NCBI GenBank assembly: GCA_965649825.1
Contig: OZ287697.1
Span: forward strand, 62,001 to 126,000
Reading direction: 5' to 3'
Length of the DNA: 64,000 nt
Source: Penicillus capitatus
Taxonomy: Eukaryota; Plantae; Chlorophyta
Part shown: one piece after another, positions 3,982 through 60,678 of the stretch
Numbering within the stretch: position 1 is the stretch's first letter
How the letters are laid out: the number at the start of each line of letters is the position of its first letter
Notes under the pieces: generated by a model
The model's input: the letters and a program-made list of their open reading frames with translations, nothing else
Databases searched by the model: none
What the model was told of the DNA's origin: nothing
Translations under genes and position numbers: made by a program

Positions 3982-4000
3982 TGTGTGTCGATCTCCTCCA

Positions 4001-6433: not shown

Positions 6434-6517
6434 GACACATGAACGGTGCGCGCACCGATCTCGATTGGACGGGACATCTGCAAAGAGTGTCTCTTCAGCA
6501 CCCCTTCCACCGGCGCC

Positions 6518-7447
6518 ATGATCTCCACAGCCACTTCTGCATCGCGTTCGACAACCATCCGACTCCGTGGCATCTCTGCGTCCCTCTCATGGAAGCCTCT
6601 CACCCGGCAGCGCGCTTCCCCGTCTGCCCCGTTTCGACAGAGGCGCCTATCGCCTAGTAAAGGGATCGAGTCGTGGAGACTTTATGCCTCGGAAGTTGAC
6701 GATGAGGTGGAAATCGTCGAAGAGGCTGACCTGGATTCCAGTTACCTTGCTGTTCTCTCTCGGGAAGATCTCCCAAAGGGACAGCGTCGGGAAGTGATGG
6801 TGGATGGAAATCGGATTGTGGTGTTTTGGTATCGAAATGAGATCGTTGCCTGCGAATCGAGATCTCCTGCCGAAGGAGCCTTCTCCACAGGTTTCGTGAA
6901 TGCCAATTTTACAGAAGACTACGGTATTATCTGTCCCGGCACCAATACCGTATTCTCACTCAAAACGGGTGAGATTCTGGAATGGTATCCCACAAATGTC
7001 GTGCTGCGGTCCATTATCCCCCAAGACACCTGTCGCAATTTGGAAGTCTATCCAGTCAAGATCACCAAGGACGCCATTTACATCTCATTCAAATCTGGAA
7101 ATCAAGGAGGCGTACGGACCATGAGATCAAGGGGTGGGGCCAAAACCTCCTTGGAAGAGAACAATGTGTTTGGACTGGAGCCCCGTGTCTACTATGAAGG
7201 TTCAGAAGCTGGAAGTCAGTCTGTCGAGAAGACGACATCAGCATCCAGTCTGCAGGGAATGAATCCTGCGACGGTGTTGATTGGGACCATCGCCGTCGCC
7301 ATCGTGGCCGTTTCCGGAACGGCTTTGGCTATTTATTATGAGTCTATTCCTGGATTGATTGTTTTTTGGGTGGTGCTCTTTGGAATTGTGGCCTACACCA
7401 TTTCCCAAACACTCGGTATTTTTGAAGAGAAACCCTCATCCTCTTGA
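6518..7447 (+). CDS. PSB33: PSB33/TEF5-like Rieske-fold thylakoid protein
   Basis: Intronless. Rieske-like domain with ESRSPAEGAF in place of the Fe-S ligand motif, C-terminal TM helices and an N-terminal transit peptide. Confidence 0.85.
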   Translation: MISTATSASRSTTIRLRGISASLSWKPLTRQRASPSAPFRQRRLSPSKGIESWRLYASEVDDEVEIVEEADLDSSYLAVLSREDLPKGQRREVMVDGNRIVVFWYRNEIVACESRSPAEGAFSTGFVNANFTEDYGIICPGTNTVFSLKTGEILEWYPTNVVLRSIIPQDTCRNLEVYPVKITKDAIYISFKSGNQGGVRTMRSRGGAKTSLEENNVFGLEPRVYYEGSEAGSQSVEKTTSASSLQGMNPATVLIGTIAVAIVAVSGTALAIYYESIPGLIVFWVVLFGIVAYTISQTLGIFEEKPSSS

Positions 7448-14092: not shown

Positions 14093-15053
14093 TTATTTTC
14101 GATGCTTCTTGCGTTTCCTCTTCTCGCGGTGTCTCTCTGACTTCTCCTTCTCTTTATGTCTCTTCAACACATCGAGTGCATGCTGTACCTCCTCCTCATC
14201 CGGAGGGCGCTTTTCAGATGCCAGCGGTAATCCTTGTCCAAAGAGACCTAACGCAGAAAGAGGGCACATTGTCGGAGACGCGATGGTGGATGGGGTCGAT
14301 GCCTTGACGGTATTGAAGGTGTGGCTGGTGTTGTGTGGCAAAAGGCTTGATGCGTGCCTCACGTTCCATCTTGCGCCGTTCGATGCGCGTTTTATATTCC
14401 ATGGCATTTCGATCAGTGGAATTGAGATCCAGTGCTCGATCAAAGTCCTTCAGTGCTGCATCGTAGAATCCTTGATTGGCATAAGCAGCTCCTCGCGCCA
14501 CATAAACATCGCAGCTGTTCGGATTGAGTTTCAATGCCTGTTCATAGGACTCGATCGCCTCTGTGTATTTCCCGGACTTGGCCAGAGCCACACCTTCTCG
14601 AAGGGCCACTTCCGACCAGGAAATATCCAATGCACCCTTCATGCATTTCCAGACATGCTCTGTTTGACGCCCATCGATCCAGAGGCCTCGAATGAGGGTT
14701 CCGCCGAAGGCATCCGTCTCTTGACGCACTCCGAGTTCTTTGGAAAGGCGAGGGACGCAGTCTGTTGCGTGAAAGGCTCTTTGCGACTGCAATTCGGTGA
14801 AGTAGTCATCGCGATGTCCTGACCGTCGGATCGCGAGAGAAGGTGACTCGAGACGTGCCGCTTTGCGCGAGAGAGAACTCTCGGACGTATCCGACCGTCG
14901 CTTGAGACTTCGAGAACGCCCTTCGCGTCGCTGGGTGTCGAGAAAGAGATGCGGCAAGAGCGATGCTTTCGCTTTCGCCACGCGCTCGGCCACCGATGGA
15001 CCATCGTCGACTGACGTCTGCATATCCATTCCTCTGACAACAGGCGCATTCAT
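14093..15053 (-). CDS. TPR-repeat protein, TTC14-like
   Basis: TPRs (GVALAKSGKYTEAIESYEQALKLNP; RGAAYANQGFYDAALKDFDRALDLN) and a basic K/R-rich C-terminus. Confidence 0.75.
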
Positions 15054-15288
15054 TCAGCACTGCCGTCGCATCATGTCTTTTCGCCGAAGATCTTCTCAAG
15101 AACCATGCGTGTGTGCGTTCGCATATGTGCGTGCGTTTGTTGCGTTTCGCCATCGTTTAGCATCGAGCGAGCTCCGACCCACCTACTGTCCGACTGAACG
15201 TTCTTCCTATCGCGTTCCGTTGCAGGAACTTTTCGAGGCGTTTACGCTTTTATCTATTTTCCCGTTCGCGCTGCTTCGTCGTCGCATC

Positions 15289-17214
15289 ATGTCCAAGGAC
15301 GCCGTCAACAACAGCAACAATGACCTTCGCAAAGAGAACTTCGATGACACCGAAGGCCTCGACGTGCTGCCCGACTATGAAGGACTCGGTGCCGAAAGCG
15401 ACGAGGGCGAAGGAGGAAAGAAAGGACTCGCCGTTCGTTCGAGTGGTTTCAAAGAATTCATGTTGAACAAAGAAGTTTATCGCGCCGTGCTCGAGAACGG
15501 TTTCGAACATCCGTCCGAAGGTACGCCGTTCGCCGAAAGCCGCAAGGAAGAGAGCGCTGGACACAGTGCAACATGAATGCATCCCCGAGGCGTTGTTGGG
15601 CCGCGACTTGGTCTGTCAGGCGAAGAGCGGCATGGGCAAAACTGCCGTCTTCGTCATCGCCGTTCTCCACCAGATTCGTCCAACGCCGAACATCGTCTCC
15701 GCCATTGTGCTCGGCCACACTCGCGAACTGGCATTTCAAGTGTGTGACGCCTCCCGTATGTGTGTCTTTGTGAATGAGGAGAGTGTATGTTCGTGCACGC
15801 AGATTACGAAGGAGTTTGAGCGGTTTGCTGTGTATCTGCCTAATGTGGTGGTCATGCCTGTGTTCGGTGGTGTCTCGTTGACTGGACAGAAAGATCAGAT
15901 TATGATGAAGTATCCGAATATCGTCGTCGGTTGCCCGGGTCGCGTCAAAGCTTTGGGCCGAGACAAGATTCTTGACTACAGTCAAGTCAAGCACTTTGTG
16001 ATGGATGAGTGCGATAAGATGCTTGCAAAGATGGACATGCGCGCAGACGTGCAGGAGATTTTCAGAATGACGCTGCACAACAAGCAAACCATGATGTTCA
16101 GTGCGACGATGTCCCGTGAGAGTCGCCTGATCTGCAAGAAGTTCCTCCACAACGTATGTGCCGACCCCATCCGTCATACACCCTCTTTTGTCCACACATC
16201 ATGATGCAAAATTCACGGGCTTGGCATCGGTGGAGCTCTCTCTCAGTCTCTGGGAAGAAAGCTTAGAAGAAGCCGTTCTCTGTGATTCTCATCGTCGATG
16301 AGACACCATCATGGTCATGGGCATGATTTAAATGATCGATCGATTCGTTTTTCTTACACATGGGAAGCCGAGATGATGGACATCACAGATCTCATGCCCC
16401 TGGCATTGTCCGGCTCAGCCGTAGCTTCCGTTTCTTTGCATGCTGTCGGAGCGGGTCTTCATCCTCTGTGTGTGCTGTGCAGCCGAAAGAGGTCTATGTG
16501 GATGACGAATCGAAACTCACACTGCATGGTCTGGTGCAGCATTTCATCATGCTAACGGAGCCCGAAAAAAATCGCAAGCTCTGCGACGTCTTGGATGCTC
16601 TCGATTTTAATCAGGTGGAAGCCCGCCTGTTACAAACGCTTTGTGTGGGAACATAGATGATGTGACTGACAGGTGGTCATCTTTGTCAAATCGGTCATGC
16701 GTGCCAAAGAGCTCAACTCTCTGCTCAAAGCTTACAACTTTCCATCCACCACCATCCACAGAGGAATGGACCAGAATGAACGGTGCGCTATACATCAGAG
16801 TCACGGTACCTTCTGACGCGCTGTCTCTGTTCAGTCTGAAAGTCTATCGCGACTTCAAGGAAGGGCAAGAACGCATTCTCGTCGCCACAGATCTCTTTGG
16901 CCGCGGCATCGACATCGAACGCGTCAACATTGTCATCAACTACGACATGCCTGAGACAACAGAGCATTCAGACGGTGCCGACACCTATTTACACAGGGTC
17001 GGTGCTCTTTTCGATGACGCTTCCCTTTTCATCACGCCTGTCATGTGAGCAGGTTGGCCGAGCGGGTCGATTTGGCACGAAAGGGCTTGCCATTACCTTT
17101 ATCGCTTCCGAAGCCGATTCCACCGTTCTCAACAGAGTCCAAGAGCGTTTCGATGTTTGCATTTCTGAAATGCCTAATGACATCGATCCGAAGACGTACA
17201 TGAACAGGGAGTAA
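15289..17214 (+). CDS. UAP56: DEAD-box RNA helicase UAP56/SUB2
   Basis: [87 protein letters not shown]. Confidence 0.97.
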
Positions 17215-27107: not shown

Positions 27108-29224
27108 TCAGAAGAAACTGGAAATATCCTGTTGCCCATTGGCACCTTGTTGTTGTTGGGGGACGCTGTTCATGGAATTCGCGGTGGTTTGAAATGGATT
27201 GCTGCCCATGGATTCCTGACGCATGGGCACGCCTGGCAGAGCAAAGCTTGGTTTCTTTTGAATACTGGGAGTCAGTCCATCGAACGGATCCGCAAGAGCA
27301 CCAGGTCCGGTGAACGTTCCGTTGGCTCCGTGAATGGCGGCGCTTGTGTGTTGGTATACAGGCATGGGACTCGGATGAATGGGCTGCTGATACAGCTGGG
27401 CCTGAGGCTGAGGCTGAAGAACAGTCGATTCGTGGCCACTGAATGGATTGTTCGACGCAGGCATCGCTGTCGGAAACACCTCCATCTGAGGCGCCGCCGG
27501 AGTTGAGAAGCCTTGCATCGGCGAAGGGTATGCCGTTTGGGCAATGAAGGATCCGGGAGAGGAACTGTCTGGAGGCGGCGGCGGTGGAGGCATCGGCCCA
27601 CCTCCAAAGAAATCATCAAAGGGCGATGCGTTCTGTTCAGTGACAACAGAAGTGGTCCCGACTGGTGATCCCAGACCGCCCGATGCTCCCCAGTCACCTA
27701 AGAAGCCGCCATCTTTGGTAGCATCTGGCGTCTGGAAGACCGTATCACCAAATGGATCCGACAACACACGTTCTGGTAAGACATCTGTCGGTTGAGCTGG
27801 GACGCTGAGATCCAACGCATCGAGACCCAGTAGATCTTGTTCGTATTCTTTTGGCTTTTCCTCTGTTGTCTTCTGGAGATTCACGACGAGCTTCGTCGTC
27901 GGTTGTCCGCCGCCATCTGAAGACGGTGCAGCAAGTGCAGCGGAGGGCGTTCCTCGTGCGTTACGCGATACGGTCGAGGGGAACTTCCGTGCTGCTGTTC
28001 TTCCCGTGGCTCCTTTCACGTATTCTTCCATCTGACTCAAGAAATCTTCCGGAGGAGGCGTCAACTGTGGAAACTGAATCTGATGTCCGATACGCAGATC
28101 TGTCACATTACATCACAACACATCGCACACTCCACAACACTCTTTCCACAAGACGCACTTTGCACGGCATTGAAGAATGTTTGCATCTGGTTGGAGCTGT
28201 TGATGGACTCGCGGTAAAGTTCGAGTCCTTTGGAGGCGTCAACGCGGTCCATTTCAAAGAACTGCTCTGCTAAATTGATCACCCCTTCCGAGATCACACG
28301 ATAAAGACGAAAGCATTCTGTGAGCAGTGCTCTCAATGCCTCCATCACAACGTCGCTCTCGGCGGCGGCCCCTTCTGGCACGCAGGCAAGTACACGTTGC
28401 AGCATTTTCTGCACTCTCGGTAACTCGTCCAGCAGTTCCTGTCCAGTAGCTGTCTTGAAACGCACGTTCGCTCCGCCTCCATCTCGATCCACATCGAATT
28501 TTATTGACTCGAAGACAGACAAACGCTCGTCCAGATAACTCGAGTACACACGGACAAAGGCTGAGAAATCCCAACTCTCTTTCTGGGACCTATCGGCAAA
28601 GTTATTGAGACGCATGAGCTCCGTCACCTTTCTCTTCTCCTTATAACGGATCATCTACCCGAACAACCTTTCTCATTATCCGATCTCAAAGTGTGATGGA
28701 TAGAGGGATAGATATCAAAAAGAATGAGACTGCGTTATTCCACGCACTTCTTGTTTGAAATTGCCATCGCTGTCAGACTTGAGGAGTTTGTGAAACACCA
28801 TCAAAGCCTTCAAGACCACCAACCACGTTTCATTTGGAGTCGTCAGCCTCTCATACAGTGCATGGACAATGTATATCACTTTTTTGCGATTCGACGACGT
28901 CGCGATAATTTCGCGCAACGCTACAAAACAACCCGCGTACGTCATTCCTGTGTCATGAGGTAGGATAGAGGAGACGCACTCCGAACGTGTTTTTCTTTGG
29001 GTGGCGTGATATCATGATTCGTTGCTTTAACGACGGCGATTTCCACATCCTATTCACCAAAATCTCACCACACATGCACTTCATTCGACATAAGCGACTT
29101 GAAATTCGCCGCCGTTTACACGGGCCGCTCCCGCCGCGAGTTTATCGGAGACCCAACTTATCGTCGACGTTGTCTTGGGCTTGCCATTGCCTCGACCATC
29201 TTTGGACATACTTGTCGTTGCCAT
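27108..29224 (-). CDS. ANTH-domain clathrin assembly protein (AP180/PICALM-like)
   Basis: TWLVVLKALMVFHKLL, NNFADRSQKESWDFSAFVRVYSSYLDERL, LYRVISEGVINLAEQFFEM; disordered tail with DPF/NPF motifs. Confidence 0.9.
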
Positions 29225-35397: not shown

Positions 35398-35625
35398 GAA
35401 ACTGTCTGTTTTTACGTTCGATGAATGGTTTGGTCGATCAACGTTCAAAGGGCCCAATTTAAGAGTTTGTGTGTGTTTGATGGATTCTCGTCACTCGTGC
35501 GGCGTATGGGTTCAGGTCGGATTCGTAGCAGTGCGTTGAGGATGGCGACATGGACATTTCCGGTGCGCGCCCCGTTCATTTATTCCCGTTTAAAATCAGC
35601 ACTTCTTAACACACACGCAGGCGAC

Positions 35626-36502
35626 ATGTCTTCAGAAGCGGACGCTCTAGATGTACTCATGGAAGAATACGAGAAACAGGCAGCAGCAGACTGCAAAGCT
35701 GTCGAGGAACGCAACGTCAAAAAACGCAACGCAAAAGAACAGACGCAGGTCGATGTGCTGCAACCTCTACCCAAACACAACAAGTTAGACGACCTCGTCC
35801 TCGGATTCCCTCCCTGCCACAAGAGCGTTTCACTGAAGGGGATATCAACTTTTAGTGAAGCTGGGATACTCAGAAGGACAGGGATTGGGCACACAGAAAC
35901 AAGGACGTTCCGAACCGCTTCCGTTGCCGTTGAAACGTCGACGGGAGGGATTGGGGACCGTCCAGCGCAAGAGGCCGACGCTGCCGAGAAGAGATGCCAC
36001 GGGTAAAACCACGCCCCTTAACCGTTCGCTGTCTCCACTGCATTGCTCAGAAGCCGAGATGGCAAAGACGACGGAATTTCGCGAGGAGATGTCTTTGCGG
36101 ATGACATGGAAGAAAACGGAGAAGCGCCTGAGGGCTGCGCGTTATCTGATAGAAGATCTGGACATGCGCGTCGGAATCGAACGGAATCCCTTTTGGCTGC
36201 CAGATCCAGAAGTCCGTCTGCCTGTTGCTCCTGTATGCGCGTCGAAATCTCGACGTTGCGTTCAGTTGGCGGCACATCATGAAGAAACGGAGACGGACAG
36301 ACTCCAATCCATGCGCGTAAGCGACGCCTTCGCTGCATCTGTTGCTTACCTTCGCGGACAGCACGCCTACTGTTTCTGGTGCCGACTTCAGGTACTCCAC
36401 TGAACACCGCAATGTTCTCTGTGTCCGTCATGTCATGTGCAGTACGAGAGCCCGAGAGAGATGGAGACGATCTGTCCAGGACTCAAAGAGGCAGATCACT
36501 GA
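35626..36502 (+). CDS. GPATCH11: G-patch domain protein, GPATCH11-like
   Basis: G-patch KLGYSEGQGLG...EPLPL...RREGLG; C-terminal YLRGQHAYCFWC...CPG. Confidence 0.8.
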
Positions 36503-36883: not shown

Positions 36884-39800
36884 ATGCTCACCGGTGCTTT
36901 GCACGTCAACCGTCCCCTGTCGAGAGTGGCAGTGCGCCGTCGTTTCTGTTCGAATCGCTTCTATGATACCTGTCGCTACTCTTTACTATCCCCTCTTTCT
37001 TGGGAGCACCACTCTCGTTCGTACTGCTGGAACGAAGAGCGAAGACAGATCTCTTGTTCCTCGGCCACGAGCGAAGAAGTGAACACGGATGACACCGTTC
37101 AGCAAGAAAAGAACAACGCCGTTCATCTCTCCCCCACTCTCCTCACGCTGCCTAAGGAAATGCAGTCAGCGATAAAGTTCCGCCCCAAAGGAAAGGAGAA
37201 ATTCACACGGCAGTTCGTGCTACTAACAAAGGATCCTGCCTTTGTCCTGCCTTCCACGGAGACGACAGCTCCGATCAGGCAGAACGTGACCCTAACGGAG
37301 GAAGAGATGATGACGATCGAAGATTTCAAACAAACAGAAATGTATCAGCGAATGTTTCGCTTTTGCCCAGATGCTCTCTGGATGTCGTATTACTGGGAAA
37401 ATGTCATTCTGCTTCCGTGCCGAGTGGCATCCGATCAGTCGTGGGAGATCGCATGGGATGTCGTACACAATCTCGTCCGTCCCGAAAGGCAAGAGCTGTA
37501 CAACGGTTTTCTTCGGATCCTGTCAGATAACCGTGAGAAGGAGGAACCGCCGAGTCCAGAGCTGATCGAAGCCATACAGAAGATCCAGTCGTTTTCGCAG
37601 GAGGCGAATTTGACGCCGGTTCCTTCAGAGGCGACGTGGGACGATGTGACAGCCTTTTTGAAAACGTGCGTCATTTCTAGTCCGAATCATTGGCCGGCGA
37701 TCTCCTTTTCTCTCCACAAGAATTTCAAAGGAACCGGGTATTTTATGTATCCTGGAGCGGCCGAAGCAGAGACGCTTCGCCGAAGCTTCGATGAACGATC
37801 GAGGATACAGCTTTCAGAAGAGACCGATACATTGTTTCCTCTCTCAGCCGATTGGCTGGTCCTCTTTATGGCCATGCAGATTTCGCTACCAGATATGGCC
37901 GAGTGGATCAATATCGTACGCCTGAAACGTGCTTTCCAGGTGATCGATGATCTTCCGACCGCATCCATTGTGCCGTACATGAGACCCTCATCAGAGAACA
38001 TGAACAAGATTGCGATGTTTGGCAAAATGATTCTTCGCATTGTCACTTTGCTGGATCAGTGGCAGACATCGAACAACTCAGTGATGAACAATAGCAAAGC
38101 CAAATCCATGGTTTCCCATGACAGCATTCGCAATGTCAGTCTGGGTGCGGCACTCGTGCAGCTGCCGAGTGTCTTTGAGGTTCTGATGCAGTGGGCAGAA
38201 GTGCGAGGGAGGAATTTGCCATCTGGATGGAACTGGGGTCCGTTGGTGTCGGCCGACAAGAAAGTGAACATCCGTGGCTGTAGGGCCGACTGGAGACGTA
38301 TGAGGATTGAGCAGACTGCTGGACAAAACTTCAAGTGTCTTGTAACCGCCAGCTACGAAACGATCGGCATGGGCGGAATCTGGAGACTCTGCGAGAGGAT
38401 CGGACTCGTTCGGCTGTGGCCAGATGGCTTCATAAAGAAGTACATCGACAACTGGAACGGCCAGCCGTTTGATCCATCAGAGGTGCAAAAATGGGAGAGA
38501 GCGCCCGTCTATCGATACAATTCCGTACGGAAGGATATCTACGACGCCTTCTGTGACGTCTTTGGCTACGAATTCCACCAGAAATACCGTTTCGATTGTG
38601 CCGTGCATCACCCCTCGATATCCAGTGTCAGCAATGCCATTTATGGATGGATGTTGATCATTGGCAGAGCGTACCTGGATCTCTTTTACCAGCAGTATGC
38701 CGAGAAAACGCGGCCGCACTTTACGCAAAGCAACATCAGCAGTCTTTTCAATGAAGTGCGGAAAGTGGAGACATGTGTGGACGTGGCCTGCAATCTCGAC
38801 CTCATAGACATAGCCAAGACCCGCATGGTGCGAATCCAGAAAGCTATAGCAGAAGACAGAGAGGACAGAGACGCATTGAAGGGTGGCCCCTTTACTCGTG
38901 GGTTTCTCTCAAACATCGTTCAGGTGTTGATCGGATGTGTGGCATGGGATGTCGGATTCGACGTCGAACGTGTGATGGAGATCATTCGACCGCACTTTGC
39001 CAGAGAGATCGATAATTCGGCAGACAAGATCGATCCCACGTACTTTGTTGTGGAACGCTACGTTCCAACGGACCTCGAGATTCAACACTTTGATAAGACG
39101 AAGGGGGCGACGTACTATCCAACGTTGATTCAGCTGAGCAGGAAAGGGAGCACGGATACGTTCTTTGGAATCTATGTGCTGACAAAGCGTCCAGTGTCAT
39201 CCTTTTCGACAACGGAGTCGACGATCGCGGTCAACGATGTGGAGATCGTGACGCGATGGCAGTTGTTCCGTTCAGGGATGAAGCTTCGCCGGTCGCAGCA
39301 GGCATTGCTGAAGGCTTTTCAGTCCGAGTGGTTTGAACCCATTCTGCCTCCAGAGACCATCACTGTTCAGAAAGCTCCACAGACGAAAAAGTATTGGTTG
39401 GCGTTTGCCAAGGACGCAATGGGCGAGTCGAGCTCTTTGGACTGGGATCTGATGCAGCATATCGTCAAGAAAACACTGCCGAAAGACATTTCACTCGTCC
39501 TGAAGCACTTATTGGGTGAAGACATCGCCGAAAAGGATGCGGAGAGAGCCGCCAAGGACGTTCTCTCGGCAGACGATTCTCTTCGTCTAACAACAGAGAA
39601 AGAGATCGAAGAGAAGGACGAGGACTTATTGAAGCAAGCGCAACATCGCCTGCTGTTTATGGCAGAGGGACGCCATGTTGTGCACATGAAAAAAGGAAAG
39701 GAGAATGTGGGCAACATCATCAACAATCATTGCCTGATGGATGTGGACGTTGCGCCAGCCGTCCGTGTTCGAGTAGCCGGGAAGTCCATCTGCTTTCAAG

Positions 39801-41059
39801 CATCCGACGCGAACTGTCTGCCGTATACAGAAGCACAGTTTCGATGTCTGACGATTGTGCCATTTCTGACCGATGTTCTGGAGAAGAGGCTGTTGGTTGA
39901 AGACTATCGTCGCATGTATGATCTGCCAGAATCCATACCGAACGAAAAATTGCTCCTCTGTCTCTCGCTCAGATCACACAGCAGTACGAAGGAGTTTGGA
40001 ATTCTGGCGATGATGGGGCATTCTGTCGCAAAGTACTTGATCACTCTGCAGATTGTGACCAACAATCAAGCACCCAGCGTGGGACAACTGTCCGTTCTGC
40101 GAACGCACCTTATGTCTGCCCGTCAGTTTATGAGCGAAAAGGACGAGCATTTTCTTCTGGGGCATATCTTTGCTCCTTACTTCCTGGCCTACAGGGACTG
40201 GTATTCACCTGCTAATCCTCCCACCGATCTACAGTCGATTCACAGAGATGATCCGGAGACGGCAGACACTGAAACGAACTCTTCTCTCGAACTGTCCCCT
40301 CCTCAGGTCGTGAAACCTGTTATGGGACGCCGCTCGTCTGGAGTGGAGCACAACGTTTCTGCAGGCGTTCCTCAGAAACAGGTCAAGGCCATCGCTATGC
40401 TCTGCTTTCTCTATGAAGGTATCGAAGCAGCCAGTGACTATCTTTACAAAACGGGTGTCATCGGGCTGGAAAAGTATCCCACTAAGAAAGAAGAGCCGCC
40501 AGAGAAGCAGCCTCAGATGAACAAGTATCTCCGGCTGTACGATACCCTGCAGTACACGTTTCAAGACATGAGCACCCTGACGTTGGCTTTCATGCATTCT
40601 TCTGCATTTCCAAAGCATGGAGACAACAACGAGATTCTGGAATTCTTGGGCGATGCTGTGCTGGATCTCTGCATGACCACATACATCTATATGAAGTACC
40701 CGGAGTTGTCTGTGGTTCCAGCCACTCGTCTGAAAATGGAACTGAACAGCAATTTTCTGTTTGGATGGCTTTCCTGTGCTCCGCCTCTGGAACTGCCAAG
40801 TCTGCTTATGCAGTCGATTCCAGGATTCCCCGAATCCCTACCCTCTCCAGAGAAGGCAAAGAACGAAGGATTTGAAGATGCGGCGGCGAAGAAAGTGGCG
40901 TCGGATCTCTTCGAGGCATTGATAGGAGCCGTCTTGGTCGATTCTGGATACTCCATCGAAACGATCAGCGAAGTGGTGCTGCGACTCATGAAAGAGCCAT
41001 TGGAGAACAAGGCCGAGTTCGGCATCTGGGATCCAGAGGCGGAGACAGAAACACCGTAG
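36884..41059 (+). CDS. Intronless 1391-aa Dicer-derived protein with four RNase III-like domains (duplicated Dicer core); only the last retains catalytic residues
   Basis: Intact signature NEILEFLGDAVL...SDLFEALIGAVLVDSG near the C-terminus. Three degenerate copies lie in register with plant DCL RNase IIIa/IIIb, and there are two platform-like segments ending in (I/L)(A/D)WD. Confidence 0.85.
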   Translation: MLTGALHVNRPLSRVAVRRRFCSNRFYDTCRYSLLSPLSWEHHSRSYCWNEERRQISCSSATSEEVNTDDTVQQEKNNAVHLSPTLLTLPKEMQSAIKFRPKGKEKFTRQFVLLTKDPAFVLPSTETTAPIRQNVTLTEEEMMTIEDFKQTEMYQRMFRFCPDALWMSYYWENVILLPCRVASDQSWEIAWDVVHNLVRPERQELYNGFLRILSDNREKEEPPSPELIEAIQKIQSFSQEANLTPVPSEATWDDVTAFLKTCVISSPNHWPAISFSLHKNFKGTGYFMYPGAAEAETLRRSFDERSRIQLSEETDTLFPLSADWLVLFMAMQISLPDMAEWINIVRLKRAFQVIDDLPTASIVPYMRPSSENMNKIAMFGKMILRIVTLLDQWQTSNNSVMNNSKAKSMVSHDSIRNVSLGAALVQLPSVFEVLMQWAEVRGRNLPSGWNWGPLVSADKKVNIRGCRADWRRMRIEQTAGQNFKCLVTASYETIGMGGIWRLCERIGLVRLWPDGFIKKYIDNWNGQPFDPSEVQKWERAPVYRYNSVRKDIYDAFCDVFGYEFHQKYRFDCAVHHPSISSVSNAIYGWMLIIGRAYLDLFYQQYAEKTRPHFTQSNISSLFNEVRKVETCVDVACNLDLIDIAKTRMVRIQKAIAEDREDRDALKGGPFTRGFLSNIVQVLIGCVAWDVGFDVERVMEIIRPHFAREIDNSADKIDPTYFVVERYVPTDLEIQHFDKTKGATYYPTLIQLSRKGSTDTFFGIYVLTKRPVSSFSTTESTIAVNDVEIVTRWQLFRSGMKLRRSQQALLKAFQSEWFEPILPPETITVQKAPQTKKYWLAFAKDAMGESSSLDWDLMQHIVKKTLPKDISLVLKHLLGEDIAEKDAERAAKDVLSADDSLRLTTEKEIEEKDEDLLKQAQHRLLFMAEGRHVVHMKKGKENVGNIINNHCLMDVDVAPAVRVRVAGKSICFQASDANCLPYTEAQFRCLTIVPFLTDVLEKRLLVEDYRRMYDLPESIPNEKLLLCLSLRSHSSTKEFGILAMMGHSVAKYLITLQIVTNNQAPSVGQLSVLRTHLMSARQFMSEKDEHFLLGHIFAPYFLAYRDWYSPANPPTDLQSIHRDDPETADTETNSSLELSPPQVVKPVMGRRSSGVEHNVSAGVPQKQVKAIAMLCFLYEGIEAASDYLYKTGVIGLEKYPTKKEEPPEKQPQMNKYLRLYDTLQYTFQDMSTLTLAFMHSSAFPKHGDNNEILEFLGDAVLDLCMTTYIYMKYPELSVVPATRLKMELNSNFLFGWLSCAPPLELPSLLMQSIPGFPESLPSPEKAKNEGFEDAAAKKVASDLFEALIGAVLVDSGYSIETISEVVLRLMKEPLENKAEFGIWDPEAETETP

Positions 41060-43744: not shown

Positions 43745-46700
43745 TCAAGCATCCGCATCAGAGCACACTGCAGTCTCGTGTCTTTCGGAGGTCGGTCTCA
43801 GCTTGCTAAGAAGATGCTTGATCTCGCACATGATCCAGAGCACCAGAATGCGAAACACTCCGGCATTCGCTGGATAGCCTTCATACTTTTCTGTCAATAT
43901 GTGTTTCAGGTACTCGGCGGCGAACTTGAGAATTAAGAACACAAAAACAAGAAAGGTTATGAGATTCAGCATGAGACAAGCGAGCGTGAGGAGCTCGCGA
44001 GTGTAATTCTCTGGGTAGTCTTCGTTATCGAGCATGATCGCAGCTTGCGTTGTCACCAGTGACACGAACAGAGATGCCAGTCTAACTTTATTCAGTTCTT
44101 GGAAGCGCTTTCGGTACGGCATCGCCATAATCTGCATCACAATAGCAAACGTGATGAAGTGCGCAATGCCGGTGATCGGCAACATGCTGTCAAACAAACT
44201 GGCACAGAACACAAGGAATGCAATGACGGCTTTCTCCAAAACAATAGCAATCTCCCAATATCGACAACGATTCAGTTTGTAACAACGGTAAAGGAAACCC
44301 GTCGTCTGATATACCCAACTGGGCTTGTGAGTGAGGTGTTCGACATGGGCCCTGAGAGAGATGACGAAGAAACCAAATAGACCAGTGTATACGACACACA
44401 TGAAGACGACGACGGAGAGCAGTTTTGTGTGGTCGCCTTCATGACATTTGAGGGCTGTGTCTACTGCCCAGTACTTGTGAGTCACATCGACTTCCCCGAA
44501 CGCTGCTGAATCGTGCACTTCGACGCAGAGGAAGGCGCTTAATGCCGTCTTCAGCACTGGCACCAAAGTGATGTACCAAAGGACCATCAATGACAACATG
44601 CATCTCTTTGAGAGGTAACGTGGAGGTCTGTCGCCTCCTGATGACGCCAGAAATATCGTCCAGAACACGATCCAGAAGAGATACACAGCACAAGGAGTGA
44701 TGGACGAACTGACGATGAGTGCCAATACCGTTGGTTGCAACGACAGGCCTTCTGAGCTCAAACATACAACTGAGTGTCGAATGCCTTCAGAGGCGAGGCC
44801 TGAGACAAATTCTGGAAGCAACACAGCAGTTAAGGAGACAAATTGTCAAGACCTCTTTGCCTTACCCCCTGCCTTTGCCATAAAGATCAGAGGAATTGCC
44901 CATCCAACGTCGACAGAAATTATCAGAAGGGTTACTTGGACATAGCTCAGTGTAATCTACAGAGTCAAAGATCAGGGTCTGCGGAACGAACAGATGATCT
45001 TGGACCTTGAACATTTCAACGGTTTTCCACTTATTTAGAGTTTTCTCGGACGCAGGTAGCCCGTCATCCACCTCATCCGCCGCCGCCTAAGGCATCTCCA
45101 CTTAGTGAATAGTAGACGTTGGTTACATTGTTCTCACTTCCATATCTAGGAGTGGAGAATTGATCGCTTGTTCCGATGGAGAAGGTGAGCTCCCGCTGGC
45201 AATCTGGCCAGTGTCTCGGCGAAGAGCACTAAGTGTGCCTCGGATTGTGATACCGGTAAGTCCCATAAGATAGAAGACTGACGTCAGAATGTAAGTCCAA
45301 CTGAAGAATCTCCCCAGACACAATTCGCATTTCGAAGAAAAACCTGATCCGTACCCCTGTCCACACGATCCACAAAGCGGTCCAGTATGTCCCTGTCACA
45401 CATCTCACGCATGCCTGCAGCTTAAGTACAGACTCACCTCTTTGCACTGTGCTTCATTGTACAGTGTCGGGAATGTCTTGTTGAAATCGCAGCTATCGAC
45501 ATCTTCTGTCACCGTTTTCAAAAGTTCCTTGCGACCATCGAAGTCGCACGCACTCGATGTGAGACATTTCCTCAGCTTTTTCGAACACGGCGTCGTGTGC
45601 CAGTATCCTTTTGCTGGAAGAATCACGTGCGTGGAACAATCTCCATTCTCGGGACAGGGGCGGCAGCTCTGATTGCGCTCTTCTCGCAGATTGTAGGTAT
45701 CAAAGCTGCACAGCTCACAGATGGTGCCATTTGCCGCAGCCACTTCTCCCATTTTGCACCCCCTGATGTTGACGTCTATCTCGACAGGTTCAATCGACTC
45801 CTCGCTGAAGTTGATCACGCATCTGTATTTTCCTTTCCTGCCAAATCCGACGACTCTGCTGAAGTTGCCACTGCCATTGATCAAAGGCACATAGAGAGCT
45901 CCCGGAAAGAAACCTCTATCTGCTGTCATGTAAGCTTCGACTGTTTCGCGATTTAGACCGATAGCTGGCCAGTGGCCTAAGCCATCGACGACTCTGAGTG
46001 CAAAGCTAGGAAGAGGTTCGCCACTCGGATGATCTTTAATTTCGAAGTGCCTCCTCTCACCGAACGCCGTCTCGTTGTCGCCTGAAAGGATTTGGATGGC
46101 CACATCCGTTGCATACGATCCTGCTTCTTCTCCATAGATTCCTGCGCGATTGCTGCTCCACGACCGGCAAATGTCGTTCTTCGAAGTGATGGATTTCAGC
46201 GTGCCGAGTTCCTGCCTGTCATAGAACTTCCTTTTCTCCTTCCTCGACCGAGAGGAGCAATCCAATCGAATAGCTCTAAAATGCGAGGTAAAGAGACCGC
46301 CTCCAGCACTCTTTGCTTCGTTCCTGCTGAGTTCGACGTCTGTGAGAACGGCAAAAGAGCAGTCAGCTAATGGCTGCGTGCAGTCCACGTCTCTCTCTTC
46401 GTTCACGAAATGGATCCCACCTTCAAAGCAGCACTCATGAACTCTGATGTATCCTTTGATCGCGATTACTCACCTCCTCGATGGGCAACGTTATTACGGA
46501 GCCTGCAGCCTTCCAGTTGGACTCCCACAAGGCGTTGCTTCGATGAACGAATGGACACTCCCCCGCCCTCCTTGGATGCAGAGTTTTCTTCGAAGACGCA
46601 ATCGTTGCACAGGAATGCCGAATCCTTGAGTCCGGCGAAGCCGCCCCCTTCTCCTTCTGACTGACATCGCAAGATGGTCAGATTCTGTGCCTCGATCTTT

Positions 46701-49700
46701 GCTGACGAGGAAAAGATGCCTCCACCCTTTTCAGAAGCTCTGCTGTCTTCCACAGTTGTGTCTGTCACGGTGACACTCCTGTTTCCTGTGACCATGATCG
46801 CCCCACCGTGCTGATGGGCCTCGCTTCGTCTGAAGGTTGAGTGCGTGATGTTGACTGTCGCGTCGTCCGCCAGTATGCTGCCGCCATCTGTCGCGTTGTT
46901 CCCTTCCATGTCGCACCGATCAAACGCTGCAGAGTGTTCTGAAACGTAGACAGCACCGCCAGAATCAGTGGCCCGGTTGTTTCGGAAACGGACGTTGGTA
47001 TACAGTCCATCGATTGTCGCTTTCTGATGAATGGCTCCTCCTTCTTTCGCGGAGTTTTTGCTGAAGCTGGAATTGAATATGCGAAGCGCAGTTGCCTCAT
47101 CAGCTGCGATGCCGCCACCGAATCGACCAGCAGTGTTCTTCGTGACATTCACCTCTGTAATCGTCAGCTCTGTGGCCGCCATGTATGACGTAAGGTAGAC
47201 GGCACCTCCATCTGTATCGGCTGTATTTCGGACAAGACTGCAGTTTGTGATGTTTGTAATGGAGTCCTCGAAAAAGAGGGCTCCTCCATTTGACGCCGTG
47301 CTGTTCGCCATTTTCGTGTCTCGAATCTCGACTGTACTCTTTTCAAAGTACATACACCCACCTTTCCCACTGACTCCTTCTGCAAACGAGGACGTGACGA
47401 TTGTAGCTGCTCCACGGATGCTAAACAGAGATCCTCCAGCAGTTTGCGACGTCTCTTCAGAGAAACGACACTCCTCGACTGTTATCTTTGACCCACTGGT
47501 CATCTGTACAGAACCACCACCTCTGCGTTTAGCCGAATTCTGCGTAAAGTCACATTGGAACAGGGAAGCCGTCGACTCTTGGTAGATATCCAGAGCTCCT
47601 CCTGAACCTGCTCGGTTCTTTTTAAAGGTAGAGCCAGAAATGTTCACTTGACAGATATCCATGCATTCAATGGCCCCACCAACGGCGTCGGCAGCGTTGT
47701 CGATAAACTTGGAGTCTCGGACGATCAATCTGGAGCTTAGAATGTAGAGAGCTGCGCCCGAGTTGCCTGCTTCGGAAGAACGGAATTTTGTGTCTCGAAT
47801 TGAAACGTCAGATTCGGTACTGGCCAGAAGACACCCTCCAGTGACATGCGCTTTCCCGCGTTTGAAGGATGAGTTTGATATATTGACTGTGGTCTCTAGG
47901 ACATTGACGTAGCCTCCGGATTCGGCAACTCCATCTTCAAACTGTGTACGAAGGATATCGACAGTGCCATTGATTGCGTAGATGGAGCCTCCTGTTCTCT
48001 TGACCGTATTCTCCGAGAGCTGACAGTCGATGAACACGACCGAACCGCCATATCCAGAGTACAGAGCGCCGCCATTCTCAGCAGAGTTCAGATTTAGCGA
48101 ACTATCAGAGACACGAATGCTCGAGGAGTCTCTGCCGGCAACGAAGCCTCCGACGTCTGTGCCTGTGTTGTTAAAAGCTCTACTGCGCTGGACAATGACT
48201 TCGGAATCGAAAATGGAAAGCACGCCGCCTTCCTTGTCCGCCGAGTTCGATTCGAAATGCGAATCCGTGATCCGAGAAACTGAATGGCTCTTCATAAAAA
48301 CGGCTCCTTCTTCCTGCGCCTGACATTCATGGACGCGTGCGTCTTTCAGAATGAGTCGACTTGAGTATTCCACTGCGATGCCGCCTCCTTTTGTGGCAGA
48401 TCCCGCTGAGATATTGGAAGTGGCCACTTCGACGGACGAAGTCTCGAGATAGAGGGAACCTCCGATGCCTGCACTGTCCTTCTCGAAAACGGCGTACTCC
48501 ATCGTCGCGTTTGAGTTTGCGAGGTAAAGGCTCCCTCCGTTCCCTTCGGCAGTATTCTTGACGAACGCACATCGATCAAGTTTGGCAGCGCTGCCATCCT
48601 CGAGGAAGAGAGCGCCTCCATCGTTCTCTGCAATGTTGTATCTGAACGACGTACTCGATACAGAGACATCGGATCGTGCAGCGAAGACGGCTGACCCGGA
48701 ACTCCCCTTGTTATTTCGAAAGGCCGAGTCAGCGATCACGGCAGAGGAATCGACCAGATGGATGCAGGAACTGAACGGGTCATCAACCCTGACAACGTCG
48801 ACGTCGTTGCGGACAAACGTCGAATCTACGAGAGACAGAGTGCCGCCTTCCACGCGAACAACGGTGAGCTCATTCTTGGAGACATTGAGCCGGGAGACCT
48901 CCATCCAAGATCCAGACGGAGCATAAAGAATAGAGGGGTTCTCTCTGTGAGACGCCTCTAGTCGGTTTTCGGACACCGTGCAGTTCACCAAACGGTTGTC
49001 GGATGCGAGCATCGCCCCACATCCGCTTCCAGAACAATCATTGTTTTCGATTGTGACATCGATCATTTCAACGATCGAACAGATCGGGGACCGGATTCGG
49101 AGGCCAACTGCCCCGTCCATCGCGTTTTTTCTGAAAATTACGTGGCTCATGCCAATGTTGCGACTCGATTGTTCTGGTGTGCATTCCTCGACGTCCACAA
49201 TGGCATATGCATGTGTACCCTTCTCTTCGCCAAAATAGCACCTTTCGAAAACGACGTTCGCAAAGGTCACGTTCTCGGCTCTGCAAAACAGACTTCATGT
49301 GCTGCTTCGACGGAGTGGAAGGCCCTTACTGGATGAGGAAGAGACCTTCGTTGTCTCGAGGACAGATGAACCGCACCTTTGTCTGCGAAAGCGGAAAGAC
49401 ATCGCCGGCGGCGACCGCTGACCCGTCACCGACAGCGGCGCTTAGGGTCAGTGGCCACGGGACATTGACTCGCGCCTTCGGTCGGATGATCCGCTCCGTG
49501 TCAAACAGCATAATGTCGCCATTTTGCGTGCAGTTGATGAGCAGCTGGAGGTCGTCTTGTATGGACTCAAGAGCGTCGTCGTCGAAGGACCACGTTCGCG
49601 TTTCATTCTCCAGATAGCGGTCGATTTGGCGAGCTGATAGGCGACACTCGTAACCTTGACAGCACGGTGTTGTCAGCCCAAATCGGACCAAAGTCAATGG

Positions 49701-53786: not shown

Positions 53787-54887
53787 ATGAGTCAAGTACG
53801 AAGAGAAAGAGGGGTGGAGCAAGGTCACGGAGAGGAGGGGTTCTACCGTGTCGAGGATGCGGGGACGAGCTTGCTCAGTTGGCTCGGTTGTGATGCGGGG
53901 TTATACGCTTCCCCGTTGCCTTTTCAGTTAGTAAAGACGCGTCTTCGGGATGGCTCCCGTCCCCTCCGCGAGGGTTTCTTGATAGACGTACAATGGATGT
54001 ATGACTTTGCCTACTACATCTGTCCACGGCTGCAAGAGAGGAGAGACCTGCTGAACGGGGAACGGGGAAGAAAGGCCGAGAGAGAACAACTACAACAGCA
54101 GTTACGGCGCGAACAGCGAAGTGCGTCTGAAGCGCAGACGGCGTGTGCTAACGCGGTCAAGGAGAGCGAACGGTGGAAAGGGCTCCACGACGAGCTGTAC
54201 CGGGAGTTTGAGCAGGGGCTGCAACAAAACGCCTTGGCTGCGCAAGCGTGGGAGGAAGTGAATGGGAAAAACGAACGGCTATCAGGGGCGAATGCGAGGT
54301 TGCGACAGGACCTTGCCGAGGCGCAGCGAAGCAGCGTCAAGGCACAGCAAGATGCAAACGAGGCACGCATTGCAGCCTCCTCTACACAACAGAAGCTCGA
54401 AGAGACAGAGACGGCCTACGAAGAGGCCAAAAAACATTTCATTCGAGCACCTGATTTGGTGCTGAGTCTTCAGTCGTTGACTAACGAGGTAAAGACGCTG
54501 CAGGAGACCGTACAGACGAGCGGCGAAAGGACGACAGAAGCGGTGGCCAGGAGACCACCGGATGGACGAAATGAGAAGACGCTGCAGCAGATGAAGCGTG
54601 TGCTGCATGACATCGGTCGATATCCGCGGCGACGACGAAGAGAAAAGGCAGCCGACGCAGCTGACGATGGCGGAAGTGTCATCAAGCGCGGTCGGATTTG
54701 CTATGTGTGCCGGTGCAAGGGGCACTTGGCAAAAAACTGTCCGCAAGTGCGGACAGTTGGTACGACGTCAGCGGAACCGACGATGTCAGATGCAGAGCAA
54801 CGGCCGGCGGAATCAAGCGCAGAAGCGTCGTCTTCAGGATGGACCATTTTCTCTGCTCTAAGACGTTTTACCTCGGGCATCGACTGA
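53787..54887 (+). CDS. Gag-like ORF: long coiled coil + single CCHC zinc knuckle
   Basis: Intact, intronless 366 aa with CYVCRCKGHLAKNC (CX2CX4HX4C) and a heptad-rich E/Q/A/R middle. Confidence 0.85.
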   Translation: MSQVRRERGVEQGHGEEGFYRVEDAGTSLLSWLGCDAGLYASPLPFQLVKTRLRDGSRPLREGFLIDVQWMYDFAYYICPRLQERRDLLNGERGRKAEREQLQQQLRREQRSASEAQTACANAVKESERWKGLHDELYREFEQGLQQNALAAQAWEEVNGKNERLSGANARLRQDLAEAQRSSVKAQQDANEARIAASSTQQKLEETETAYEEAKKHFIRAPDLVLSLQSLTNEVKTLQETVQTSGERTTEAVARRPPDGRNEKTLQQMKRVLHDIGRYPRRRRREKAADAADDGGSVIKRGRICYVCRCKGHLAKNCPQVRTVGTTSAEPTMSDAEQRPAESSAEASSSGWTIFSALRRFTSGID

Positions 54888-58212: not shown

Positions 58213-60678
58213 ATGAACAACTCCGTTGCAGCATGTGGTCTCTTTGCCAGCAAACTGCCACCTCTCTACGCGGTCCCTCCTACTAGAGTCGCATATTTTA
58301 AGTCGCCACGTTTCCGAGATAGTCCCTCTCCGTTCAACACCTCCTTCGTATCTTTTCGTTCGAGAAGAAGTCGTCGACTGCGACGAGAGCTCGTTTCCGT
58401 CAAAGAGGTCAGTCACACTTGTCTCACTCCTTTATCCCAATAACACCTCTCTCCTATGTTTACCAGGTCGGAATTGCGGGAAGTGTGGAGAGCGCCCCTG
58501 AAGGAAATGGCAATGGGCTGTCTGTTGGCAACGGCGTTCTGGAAGATCTGCCGCCGCAAAAGACGAATGGAAGTGCGGCCATTGTTCCGGTGTCCTCAGT
58601 CAAAGCCATTGCCAGTGGTAATGGGGTGGATGTGACGACATGGACTGATCCCTGTACTGCCGGTCAAGTGGAAGCGTGTGCCGCACTTCGAGCCACAGAA
58701 TCGGATACGATCGATCCACCCCTCGAAGATAAATGGAGCAAACGCAAGACTTATAACTCATTACAGGTGTGCATCGCAGACATTGAACGACATGATGTGA
58801 CAGGTGGGTGTGTAGAGGACACTCGAAGTGTGGTCCTTCGCTTTCTCCTTCTTCCTGCAGCTCTGGTGGACGAATTCGCGTTTCAGTTATCCCCGAAACG
58901 GCTTCACTCCTGAAGCCATCTCAGAAAAGAAAAAGAAACTGGCAGCGTGGTTGCGGAAGGAATTGGTGCGTTCATGAGCGCAGAGATCGTTTGGGTATGA
59001 GTGAGGGTGTGGTGAAGGTGCGCCTGGGTCCAACCTTCATCAAGATCGGCCAACAGTTCTCGACTCGAGTCGACGTACTGTCACAGGAATTCATCAAAGA
59101 ATTGGAGCAGCTTCAAGACAACGTCCCTCCCTTCGACTCGCGTCTCGCCGTGCAGATCGTGGAAGAGAGTTACGGAAAGAAAATCAGCGATACGTTCGAG
59201 TACTTTAACAAGACCCCGATCGCCGCCGCCAGTTTGGGCCAGGTATGAGATCGGCAGACAGAACATAAGGATGGAACTAACAGCATCTGTAGGTGCATAT
59301 GGCACGGCTGAAGGGAGAGACGGTAGTCGTCAAGGTACAGCGACCAGGTTTGAAGGAACTGTTCGACATCGATCTGAAGAACATCCGTGTCCTGGCTCAG
59401 ATTCTGCAGTCCATGGATCCCAAATCGGATGGAGCGGCTCGCGATTGGGTGGCCATCTACGACGAATGCTCACGGATTCTGTACGAAGAGATCGATTACG
59501 TCAAAGAAGCGTCAAATGCCGAACAGTTTCGTGCGAATTTCGCAGAGGTGGATTGGGTCAAAGTGCCTCGAGTGTTCTGGGAGTACATCACACCAGAGGT
59601 ACTTGTCATGGAATACTGCCCAGGGACTAAAATCAACAACGCTGAGAAGATCGATGAGCTGGGCATGAACCGACAGCAGTTGGCTCGATACGCCGTCGAA
59701 TCCTACCTCCAACAAATCCTGAGACACGGATTCTTTCATGCCGATCCGCACCCGGGGAATGTGTCCGTGGATAACGTCAACGGAGGACGCCTGATTTACT
59801 ATGACTTTGGTATGATGGGGTCGATTCCTGGCAATGTGAAGGAGGGATTGGTGGAACTGTTCTATGGGGTCTACAAGAAAGACATAGAGAAATGCGTGGA
59901 GGCGTTGATGGAGATGGGTGTGTTAGTCAAGGGAGGTGACATGACAGCCATTCGACGAACAGGCCAATTTTTTCTGACGAGCTTTGAGGAACGGCTGAAG
60001 CAGCAGAGGGATGAGAGGGAGAATAATCCAGAGGCATACAAAAAGTCTTTCAAGCCGCAAAGAACGAAGGACGAATCGAAGGCGATGCGGAAGAAGATCT
60101 TGGCGAATATTGGCGAAGATCTGTTGGTGACGGCTGCCGATCAGCCGTTTCGATTTCCAGCCGAGTTTACCTTTGTCGTCCGTGCCTTCTCCGTTTTGGA
60201 CGGCATCGGCAAATCCCTTGACAATCGATTTGACATTTCTGAAATTGCGGCGCCCTACGCCAGGGATTTTGTCCTGGAGGGTCGCCCACAGCTGAAGAAA
60301 CTGCAGGAAGAGTTCAGTCGACGAGCCGCTCTGCAGAAACGCGCTGTACTGAATCTCTTCAAAGGACCGAATATGATTGAAGAAATGAATCTGTTGCTTG
60401 GACGAATGGAACGAGGAGAATTGAAACTCAGAGTGCGCGCCTTGGAAGCGGAACGGGCGCTGAGTCGCGTTGAATCGTGGCAATCGGCTTTGGGTAGCGC
60501 CGTCGTGGCATCGACCTTGGTGAACGTGGGCACGATGTTTCGTCTAAATTCTATGGGCTGGGCATCGGTCGTCACATTCACATTCGCCACCTTCTTTGCC
60601 CTGATGTCGATGGCCTCCTTCCTCAAGGTCAAATCGCTGGAGAAAAAAGAGAAACAGATAACGGGAGCGGCGGCGTAG
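58213..60678 (+). CDS. ABC1K8: ABC1/UbiB atypical kinase, ABC1K8/OSA1-like, plastid
   Basis: LGPTFIKIGQQFSTRVD, PIAAASLGQVH, VVVKVQRPG, FFHADPHPGN, YYDFGMMG, IGEDLLVTAADQPFRFPA. Confidence 0.92.

Follow-up and report, generated by a model that had tools for sequence, protein, structure and literature searches.

The window analysed here is a 64,000-nucleotide stretch of a Penicillus capitatus assembly (contig OZ287697.1, positions 62,001 to 126,000 of the forward strand), and the gene under study within it, the double Dicer gene, encodes a protein that almost certainly carries a minimal Dicer core duplicated in tandem, with a platform, an insert at the position of PAZ, a connector helix, an RNase IIIa domain and an RNase IIIb domain predicted to follow one another twice along the same chain (Table 1). 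The gene is a complete and intron-less open reading frame (ORF) with an in-frame stop four codons 5' of its ATG. Directly upstream lies a separate gene for a G-patch/DUF4187 protein, so that no helicase exons are hidden immediately before the ORF. A protein identical to the double Dicer (P0001) was called on a 1.46 Mb ENA contig, and an orthologue of 1392 residues that is 77% identical (P0002) was found on a 4 Mb ENA contig with neighbouring genes shared. The genes neighbouring the double Dicer gene are split by introns.

Conventional domain scans of the protein with Pfam and NCBIfam returned one domain only above threshold, a C-terminal RNase III domain at residues ~1220-1376 that corresponds to IIIb-2. 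Scanning the chain in pieces added two sub-threshold matches, one to Ribonucleas_3_3 at residues 546-705 (IIIb-1; E 0.16, with nearly the full profile covered) and one to Ribonuclease_3 on the signature helix within residues 961-1215 (IIIa-2; E 0.036). The same piecewise scan gave no match for IIIa-1, platform-1 and slot 1 within the first 545 residues, nor for platform-2 and slot 2. Neither database detected a helicase, a DUF283 or a double-stranded RNA-binding domain (dsRBD) in the window protein, whose C-terminus lies about 15 residues beyond IIIb-2. As judged by eye, its N-terminus resembles an organellar presequence, and several relatives have Lys/Arg clusters resembling nuclear localisation signals instead. 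These scans bear out the initial annotation, which had seen no helicase, clear PAZ or dsRBD in the protein, and the motifs that it quoted for each half were all found at the places it had given for them.

Table 1. Features of the double Dicer gene and of its surroundings in the window. Residues are those of the double Dicer protein or, for other genes, ORF lengths; dN/dS is the ratio of nonsynonymous to synonymous substitution rates.
Feature	Positions	Strand	Residues	Basis or remark
Double Dicer ORF, complete, intron-less	36884..41059	+	1391 plus stop	Open for 1391 codons
N-terminal segment, poorly conserved, Arg/Ser-rich at start	36884..37180	+	~99	Alignment A1; dN/dS 0.41, highest in the protein
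Putative platform-1	37181..37498	+	100-205	FVLLTK...ILLPC...WEIAWDV; hhalign to platform-2, probability 97.8%, E 1.3e-12
PAZ-sized slot 1	37499..37837	+	206-318 (113)	PAZ position; dN/dS ~0.25
Connector helix 1	37838..37969	+	319-362	LFPLSADWLVLFMAMQISLPDMAEWINIVRLKRAF; inside the single-stretch N-half alignments to DCL1 and DCL3; hhalign to connector-2, E 1e-3
RNase IIIa-1, dead	37970..38518	+	A377, K381 / Q481, K484	N-half profile aligns to DCL3/DCL1 IIIa
RNase IIIb-1, dead	38519..38998	+	G588, L591, R595 / N677, Q680	hhalign to IIIb-2; most constrained segment, dN/dS 0.14
Platform-2	39101..39478	+	740-865	FGIYVLTKRP...FQSEWFEPI...KKYWLA...LDWDLM; family profile vs Dicer platforms
PAZ-sized slot 2	39479..39838	+	866-985 (120)	Spanned by single-stretch alignments to DCL4 (712-1369) and to P0013
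Connector helix 2	39839..39958	+	986-1025	LPYTEAQFRCLTIVPFLTDVLEKRLLVEDYRR; aligns to DCL1 and Dcr-1 connectors
RNase IIIa-2, dead	39959..40513	+	A1042, H1046 / K1165, K1168	DCL1 alignment over 967-1374
RNase IIIb-2, catalytic residues intact	40514..41023	+	E1250, E1253, D1257, D1341, E1344	Pfam Ribonuclease_3, E 4e-18
PsbP-family ORF	3193-4068	-
Rieske-like [2Fe-2S] ORF	6446-7447	+		Hydrophobic membrane segment at end (by eye)
DEAD-box helicase, at least two + strand ORFs, with overlapping TPR-like ORF on the - strand	14214-16204	+ and -		DECD motif, UAP56-like by eye
Cytochrome P450 ORF	21109-22287	+		Pfam 7.5e-55, starting at profile position 86
ANTH-domain ORF and adjoining Pro/Gln-rich ORF	27108-28654	-	332 (Pro/Gln-rich ORF)	Clathrin assembly type
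G-patch/DUF4187 gene	35425-36403			Directly upstream of the double Dicer gene
Chlamydia-PMP-type repeat ORF, Cys-rich ORF, multi-pass membrane ORF	43745-49270	-	934 (repeat ORF)	Repeat Pfam 2e-24; Cys-rich ORF weakly ephrin-receptor-like
Coiled-coil ORF with C-terminal CCHC zinc knuckle	53787-54887	+	366	CYVCRCKGHLAKNC; no Pfam match
ABC1K8-like plastid kinase ORF	59293-60678	+

The clearest sign of duplication comes from comparing the two halves of the protein through profiles built from its family. Cutting the family alignment at residues 712/713 and comparing the profile of residues 85-712 with that of residues 713-1391 by hhalign aligned ~102-711 with 753-1375 over 574 collinear columns (probability 99.96%, E 6.1e-39), so that the two similar halves proposed in the initial annotation prove homologous along their full length. 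When the domains were compared one by one, the best internal match of each segment was its counterpart in the other half, with the similarity strongest between IIIb-1 and IIIb-2 (E 6e-29) and declining through the two platforms (E 1e-12), the two IIIa domains (E 4e-8) and the two connectors (E 1e-3) to the PAZ-sized inserts, between which hhalign detected no similarity. Single-sequence BLASTP of one half against the other was nearly blind to this relationship, returning one weak match of IIIb-1 to IIIb-2 (E 0.001), and for this reason the duplication is clearly visible only with family profiles. It follows that either the complete module was duplicated or two paralogous Dicers were fused.

Comparison with solved structures indicates that each half derives from Dicer, as the initial annotation had proposed. 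With the profile of the whole family, a single alignment to Arabidopsis thaliana DCL1 (7eld; E 1.2e-60) covers connector, IIIa and IIIb (residues 967-1374), so that the C-terminal half falls within this match; the profile also matched DCL3 (7vg2) at E 9e-54 and DCL4 (9kby) in a single stretch covering residues 712-1369. Around platform-2 (residues ~719-841), the profile matched the platform of Drosophila Dcr-1 with a stretch E of 6e-4 and that in 4ngf, a human platform-PAZ-connector cassette, at E 4e-5, as well as the DCL1 platform. Taken alone (alignment A2), the N-terminal half matched DCL4 at E 5.3e-26, DCL3 at E 3e-21 in a single stretch (profile 144-633 against residues 901-1396) and DCL1 at E 6.7e-20 (profile 216-633 against residues 1293-1722), the latter two alignments spanning the connector through IIIa and IIIb. 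Because the N-terminal half matches solved plant Dicers by itself, this dead half is Dicer-derived in its own right. Its profile also matches Dicer IIIb domains through IIIb-1, with E 2.5e-18 for the DCL4 stretch and E 1e-17 for human 2eb1. The best solved relatives of IIIb-2 are likewise Dicer IIIb domains, human Dicer IIIb (2eb1) being matched at E 1e-9 with the single sequence and at 6e-36 with the profile.

Set against the features that characterise Dicers, the protein has the tandem IIIa-IIIb pair twice, once in each half, and it has a platform and a connector, the first copies of which are supported through their homology to the second and through the DCL1/DCL3 alignments. Platform-1 had no direct PDB match in the N-half profile search, and its putative assignment comes solely through its similarity to platform-2. 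Connector-2 holds six residues that are invariant in the family (P993, E1000, L1003, L1004, D1007 and R1009; alignment A1), and IIIa-2 retains the GH...F...W.PP segment typical of Dicer IIIa domains. Two live sites, as Dicers have, are not present, as IIIb-2 alone carries the acidic metal ligands, and the PAZ domain is not recognisable; for these two reasons the protein is better described as Dicer-derived than as a Dicer. The window protein gave no Pfam PAZ match even at E 10, and neither PAZ-sized slot aligned convincingly by hhalign with the PAZ of P0013, a single Dicer-like relative (probability 0.2%). The inserts nevertheless sit in the PAZ position and are under constraint as measured by dN/dS, and the stretch of the Ostreobium homologue (P0006) that aligns to slot 1 gave a sub-threshold Pfam PAZ match (E 4.4e-5). 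Membership of the Drosha family is not indicated, given weaker scores and no dsRBD: with the whole-family profile, Drosha chains matched at E ~1e-22 and through IIIb-2 only, against 1e-60 to 1e-48 for Dicers, and the scores of Drosha and bacterial RNase III, much lower, were confined to the IIIb domains. An origin from an oomycete DCL2-type or Drosha-type protein was considered and rejected; the "four RNase III domains" mentioned in PMC4791657 belong to two separate oomycete proteins.

The four RNase III domains differ sharply in their metal-binding residues. Using IIIb-2 as reference and Aquifex numbering (E37, E40, D44, D107 and E110), we tabulated for the window protein N, A, K, Q and K at these five positions in IIIa-1, G, L, R, N and Q in IIIb-1, and G, A, H, K and K in IIIa-2, with E, E, D, D and E in IIIb-2. 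This upholds the earlier claim of three dead RNase III domains with IIIb-2 alone intact and extends it to the family: across nine aligned relatives, the D107/E110 pair is absent from IIIa-1, IIIb-1 and IIIa-2 in every member, and E40, D44, D107 and E110 of IIIb-2 are kept wherever a relative's sequence covers them. Individual lineages still show remains of the first motif, RLEYVGD in IIIa-1 of Ostreobium and ALENLGD in IIIb-1 of Bryopsis, and LE..G is seen in IIIa-2 of three members; these traces match what would be expected to remain after the decay of once-active domains. At position E110, IIIa-2 carries Lys in all but one of the nine members, the exception having Arg.

Plant chloroplast RNC1 is an RNA-binding protein with dead RNase III domains, and the double Dicer might similarly be a pseudoenzyme, a non-catalytic RNA-binding scaffold in which the acids of IIIb-2 are kept for structure or for metal-dependent binding. 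That three domains are dead yet conserved implies that non-catalytic RNase III domains are useful to the protein, and dead RNase III domains with RNA-binding roles are known from KREPB4/5 (PMC5648035). We nonetheless regard a pseudoenzyme as improbable, since the four metal-ligand positions of IIIb-2 are invariant among relatives that share only ~20% identity overall and the same positions are freely replaced in the other three domains, a signature of selection for catalysis.

Relatives of the protein are few, and finding them depended on the method of search. An exhaustive phmmer search of 1.84 billion cluster representatives with residues 1-1200 as query returned 12 clusters at E <= 1e-3, seven of which are proteins of 1319-1511 residues that are collinear with the double Dicer from end to end (alignment A1). 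A word-indexed protein search, whether queried with the protein by itself or with family alignment A1, found only the protein itself, P0002 and one Drosha-like animal protein; with A1 it missed P0003-P0010, which are representatives in the same collection, and its negatives therefore do not amount to absence. Two family members alone carry species names, GMH38406.1 from Bryopsis sp. KO-2023 (BSKO_06290, annotated as "hypothetical protein") and CAD7698378.1 / A0A8S1IWJ5 from Ostreobium quekettii ("RNase III domain-containing protein"), both organisms being siphonous green algae of the order Bryopsidales. Their proteins have two collinear Dicer cores as in the window protein (alignment A1). The alignments place the window gene in a small family of siphonous/ulvophycean green algae that is conserved over its full length, and because the architecture is common to both, the duplication is older than the split between the window's clade and the clade of Bryopsis and Ostreobium. 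A further match of the exhaustive search, P0013, is a canonical single Dicer-like protein of 974 residues. It resembles the double Dicer in its platform, connector and RNase III features, scoring 178 bits with the hidden Markov model of the C-terminal half and 83 bits with that of the N-terminal half, but differs in having one core, a PAZ that Pfam recognises at E 3e-9 and intact motifs in both of its RNase III domains, and it looks like the unduplicated parental type. The initial annotation knew of no described four-RNase-III Dicer derivative, and our search of open-access full text and bioRxiv likewise returned no published description of one, although absence there is not proof.

Comparison with the orthologue P0002 allowed selection to be followed along the whole chain. 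At a synonymous divergence (dS) of 0.47, dN/dS is 0.27 overall, and by segment it is 0.21 for residues 101-360, 0.29 for IIIa-1, 0.14 for IIIb-1 (the lowest), 0.22 for the inter-module junction (residues 701-800), 0.29-0.37 for the middle of the C-terminal half and 0.27 for IIIb-2, with the N-terminal module outside IIIb-1 at 0.21-0.29. Three neighbouring genes have dS 0.48-0.56 and dN/dS 0.26-0.37. Purifying selection acts along the entire chain, the dead N-terminal module included; the dead module is constrained at least as strongly as the live one, and the gene is not decaying. The orthologue check that the initial annotation had suggested thus finds the dead half with values as low as those of the live half, and its argument that a reading frame fully open over 4.2 kb speaks against simple decay gains from the frame being uninterrupted in the orthologue as well.

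The same data bear on whether the architecture could be an artefact, in which two adjacent Dicer genes are read as one ORF, the region is mis-assembled, or the gene is a pseudogene. What favours this is general caution only, the window and its orthologue both coming from metagenome-type assemblies. We find it very hard to credit, given that two species separated by dS 0.47 both keep the 4.2 kb ORF without interruption, at dN/dS 0.27, that the inter-module junction is conserved (P728 is invariant in alignment A1, and dN/dS there is low), and that independent gene models from Bryopsis and Ostreobium, together with several other assemblies, show the same architecture in proteins of 1319-1511 residues.

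The remaining genes of the window provide its wider context. The ABC1K8-like plastid kinase has its best named match in Bryopsis sp. KO-2023 (72%, with other chlorophytes at 63-67%), by which the window lies nearest Bryopsis; the kinase is 97% identical in the sister species, compared with 77% for the double Dicer, and a single 7.05 Mb contig of Bryopsis carries both the ABC1K8-like gene (BSKO_06121) and the homologue of the double Dicer (BSKO_06290). The window locus and the sister locus are found on megabase contigs (L001 and L002, ENA ERZ26696514 and ERZ25074695) that bear coverage tags in their names, in the manner of metagenome assemblers (ctg..._41x_l and ctg..._180.19x_l); apparently two related ulvophyte-like algae were assembled within metagenome data. 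The three ORFs at 43745-49270, in the order given in Table 1, are probably exons of one large surface protein, and synteny with the sister contig L001 extends to them, at dN/dS 0.26-0.37. Introns are implied for the DEAD-box helicase because it extends over more than one ORF, and its start overlaps with a TPR-like ORF read from the other strand. An upstream exon is probably missing from the cytochrome P450 ORF; the ANTH-domain ORF and its Pro/Gln-rich neighbour are likely one gene, in a region that is syntenic in both L001 and L002. The coiled-coil ORF with the zinc knuckle may be what remains of a gag-like gene, or else a zinc-knuckle protein of the host. The PsbP-family and Rieske-like ORFs, both of plastid type, helped to identify the window as green-algal. 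An origin from a trypanosomatid, suggested by GC content and the long ORF, and then one from a diatom or stramenopile were considered and rejected on the plastid-type genes, the introns of the neighbouring genes and the best matches to Bryopsis and other chlorophytes. Neither Rfam nor tRNA scans gave a match in the window.

To our knowledge, every RNase III enzyme characterised so far works as a dimer in which each of two RNase III domains cuts one strand. In Dicer and Drosha this dimer is intramolecular, IIIa pairing with IIIb. By the same logic, IIIa-2 and IIIb-2 of the double Dicer would fold into an intramolecular pseudo-dimer with a single catalytic centre, only one strand of a bound duplex would be hydrolysed, and the product would be nicked or asymmetrically cut double-stranded RNA (dsRNA). 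The strand cut would be the one carrying the 5' end, by analogy with IIIb of human Dicer, and the conserved lysines in the dead IIIa-2 site could plausibly grip the phosphate of the uncut strand without hydrolysing it. The dead IIIa-1/IIIb-1 pair, together with its own platform and connector, would most likely form a second and non-catalytic dsRNA-gripping unit, which would make the binding surface or the measured distance longer, or would grip a second helix. Mechanistic precedents have been reported: DICER1 IIIb mutations abolish cutting of the 5' arm only (PMC6695490), engineered E. coli RNase III heterodimers nick dsRNA (PMC5648035), and for the trypanosome editosome it is proposed that a dead subunit in the RNase III dimer limits cutting to one strand, the mRNA being cut and the guide RNA spared (PMC5648035).

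We consider the chances about even, or slightly better, that the double Dicer is a one-site dsRNA-nicking enzyme with the dead module serving as an RNA-binding extension. A more specific version, in which two fused Dicer cores constitute a natural and conserved strand-selective dsRNA nickase, the dead core acting as a second ruler or clamp and the only live site placing its nick in one defined strand, at a distance fixed relative to an RNA end or to a second helix held by the protein, is offered tentatively and with the balance leaning somewhat against it. An enzyme of this type could have a role in an unusual small-RNA or dsRNA-control pathway of giant coenocytic green algae. Bryopsis and Ostreobium carry persistent dsRNA replicons (PMC7594059), and a link between these replicons and the double Dicer is speculation.

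Several considerations weigh against a one-site nicking enzyme and need to be set beside the analogies above. The mechanism is predicted here from sequence, with the pairing of IIIa-2 with IIIb-2 and the fold of the N-terminal module both assigned by homology. PAZ-like end recognition, which a ruler might use, is not demonstrable by Pfam or hhalign in either slot. AlphaFold2 models built from two-row alignments (the window protein and P0002) reached a mean predicted local distance difference test score of only 34.5 for residues 85-712 and 33.2 for residues 982-1391; the domain assignments themselves draw on profile-sequence and profile-profile statistics, which are strong. Finally, the second active site could come from a further copy of the protein or from a different RNase III protein.

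This last point leads to a distinct alternative in which an oligomer cuts both strands, assembled either from two copies of the protein or from one copy together with a canonical RNase III or Dicer; pairing of IIIb-2 with IIIb-2 would be possible, the cuts would be normal staggered ones through both strands, and the three dead domains would serve only as scaffold. Class 1 RNase III enzymes and Kluyveromyces polysporus Dcr1 work as homodimers, and both are among the PDB matches of IIIb-2. Partners may also exist, as P0013 with its two live domains lies in the same sequence neighbourhood. We consider such an oligomer unlikely, if by no means negligible, because IIIa-2 keeps features specific to Dicer IIIa domains and a collinear position beside IIIb-2, and because it is conserved throughout the family with a fixed Lys in its dead site, as is more readily understood of a domain kept as intramolecular partner than of a bystander. 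Should an oligomer indeed cut both strands, the finding would reduce to an unusual domain architecture.

If one-site cleavage is instead correct, the double Dicer would be a naturally evolved dsRNA nickase and a possible reagent, with an activity that has so far been seen only in engineered heterodimers and is otherwise a proposal made for editosomes. What defines Dicer and Drosha is one live intramolecular pair that makes a staggered double cut, and this protein would offer a natural experiment in one-site Dicer action, which could mean nicking, strand-selective processing or asymmetric product release. It would also inform the uses to which dead RNase III pairs may be put, as clamp, ruler or scaffold, and the ways in which silencing enzymes may diversify, here by internal duplication followed by loss of catalytic residues. 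More broadly, it points to an RNA pathway still unexplored in the siphonous green algae, a lineage whose giant single cells carry persistent dsRNA elements.

Among known systems, the repeated unit of the double Dicer is closest in sequence to the plant DCLs. Canonical Dicers and plant DCLs (7eld, 7vg2, 9kby; human 5zak; Dcr-1 8dfv) share their domain order with each algal half, and features of canonical type, the LLAED.R motif of the connector and the GH..F..W.PP segment of IIIa, recur in the algal protein. Unlike them, the double Dicer has the core twice, one live site of four, no helicase, DUF283 or dsRBD, and a PAZ that is unrecognisable. Helicase, DUF283 and C-terminal dsRBD are found in most, but not all, Dicers. 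The Dicer of Giardia intestinalis, for example, consists of platform, PAZ, connector and two RNase III domains and lacks helicase and dsRBD. Its minimal make-up (2ffl/2qvw) equals that of the algal repeated unit, and 2ffl is among the PDB matches of IIIb-2; it differs in having a single unit, both of whose sites are live and whose PAZ works, and the similarity is weak (profile E 3e-14, IIIb only).

In function, the closest natural analogue of a one-site RNase III dimer is the trypanosome editosome, where KREN1-3 are proposed to pair, live with degenerate, with KREPB4/B5 and partners, so that one strand only of a duplex, the mRNA and not the guide RNA, is cut (PMC5648035; PMC6800513). There the live and dead domains belong to separate proteins of a mitochondrial complex that are not Dicer-derived, whereas the algal protein is one chain with an extra dead pair. 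No sequence relation of the double Dicer to KREN/KREPB was detected: Pfam found no U1-like zinc finger, PUF or dsRBM, and the profile matches are all to Dicer or RNase III. Loss of the acids in one domain also produces single-strand cutters in artificial E. coli RNase III heterodimers (PMC5648035) and in DICER1 IIIb hotspot mutants (PMC6695490). Those are laboratory constructs or disease alleles, whereas in the algal protein the one-site state is the conserved wild type and the dead domain is of IIIa type.

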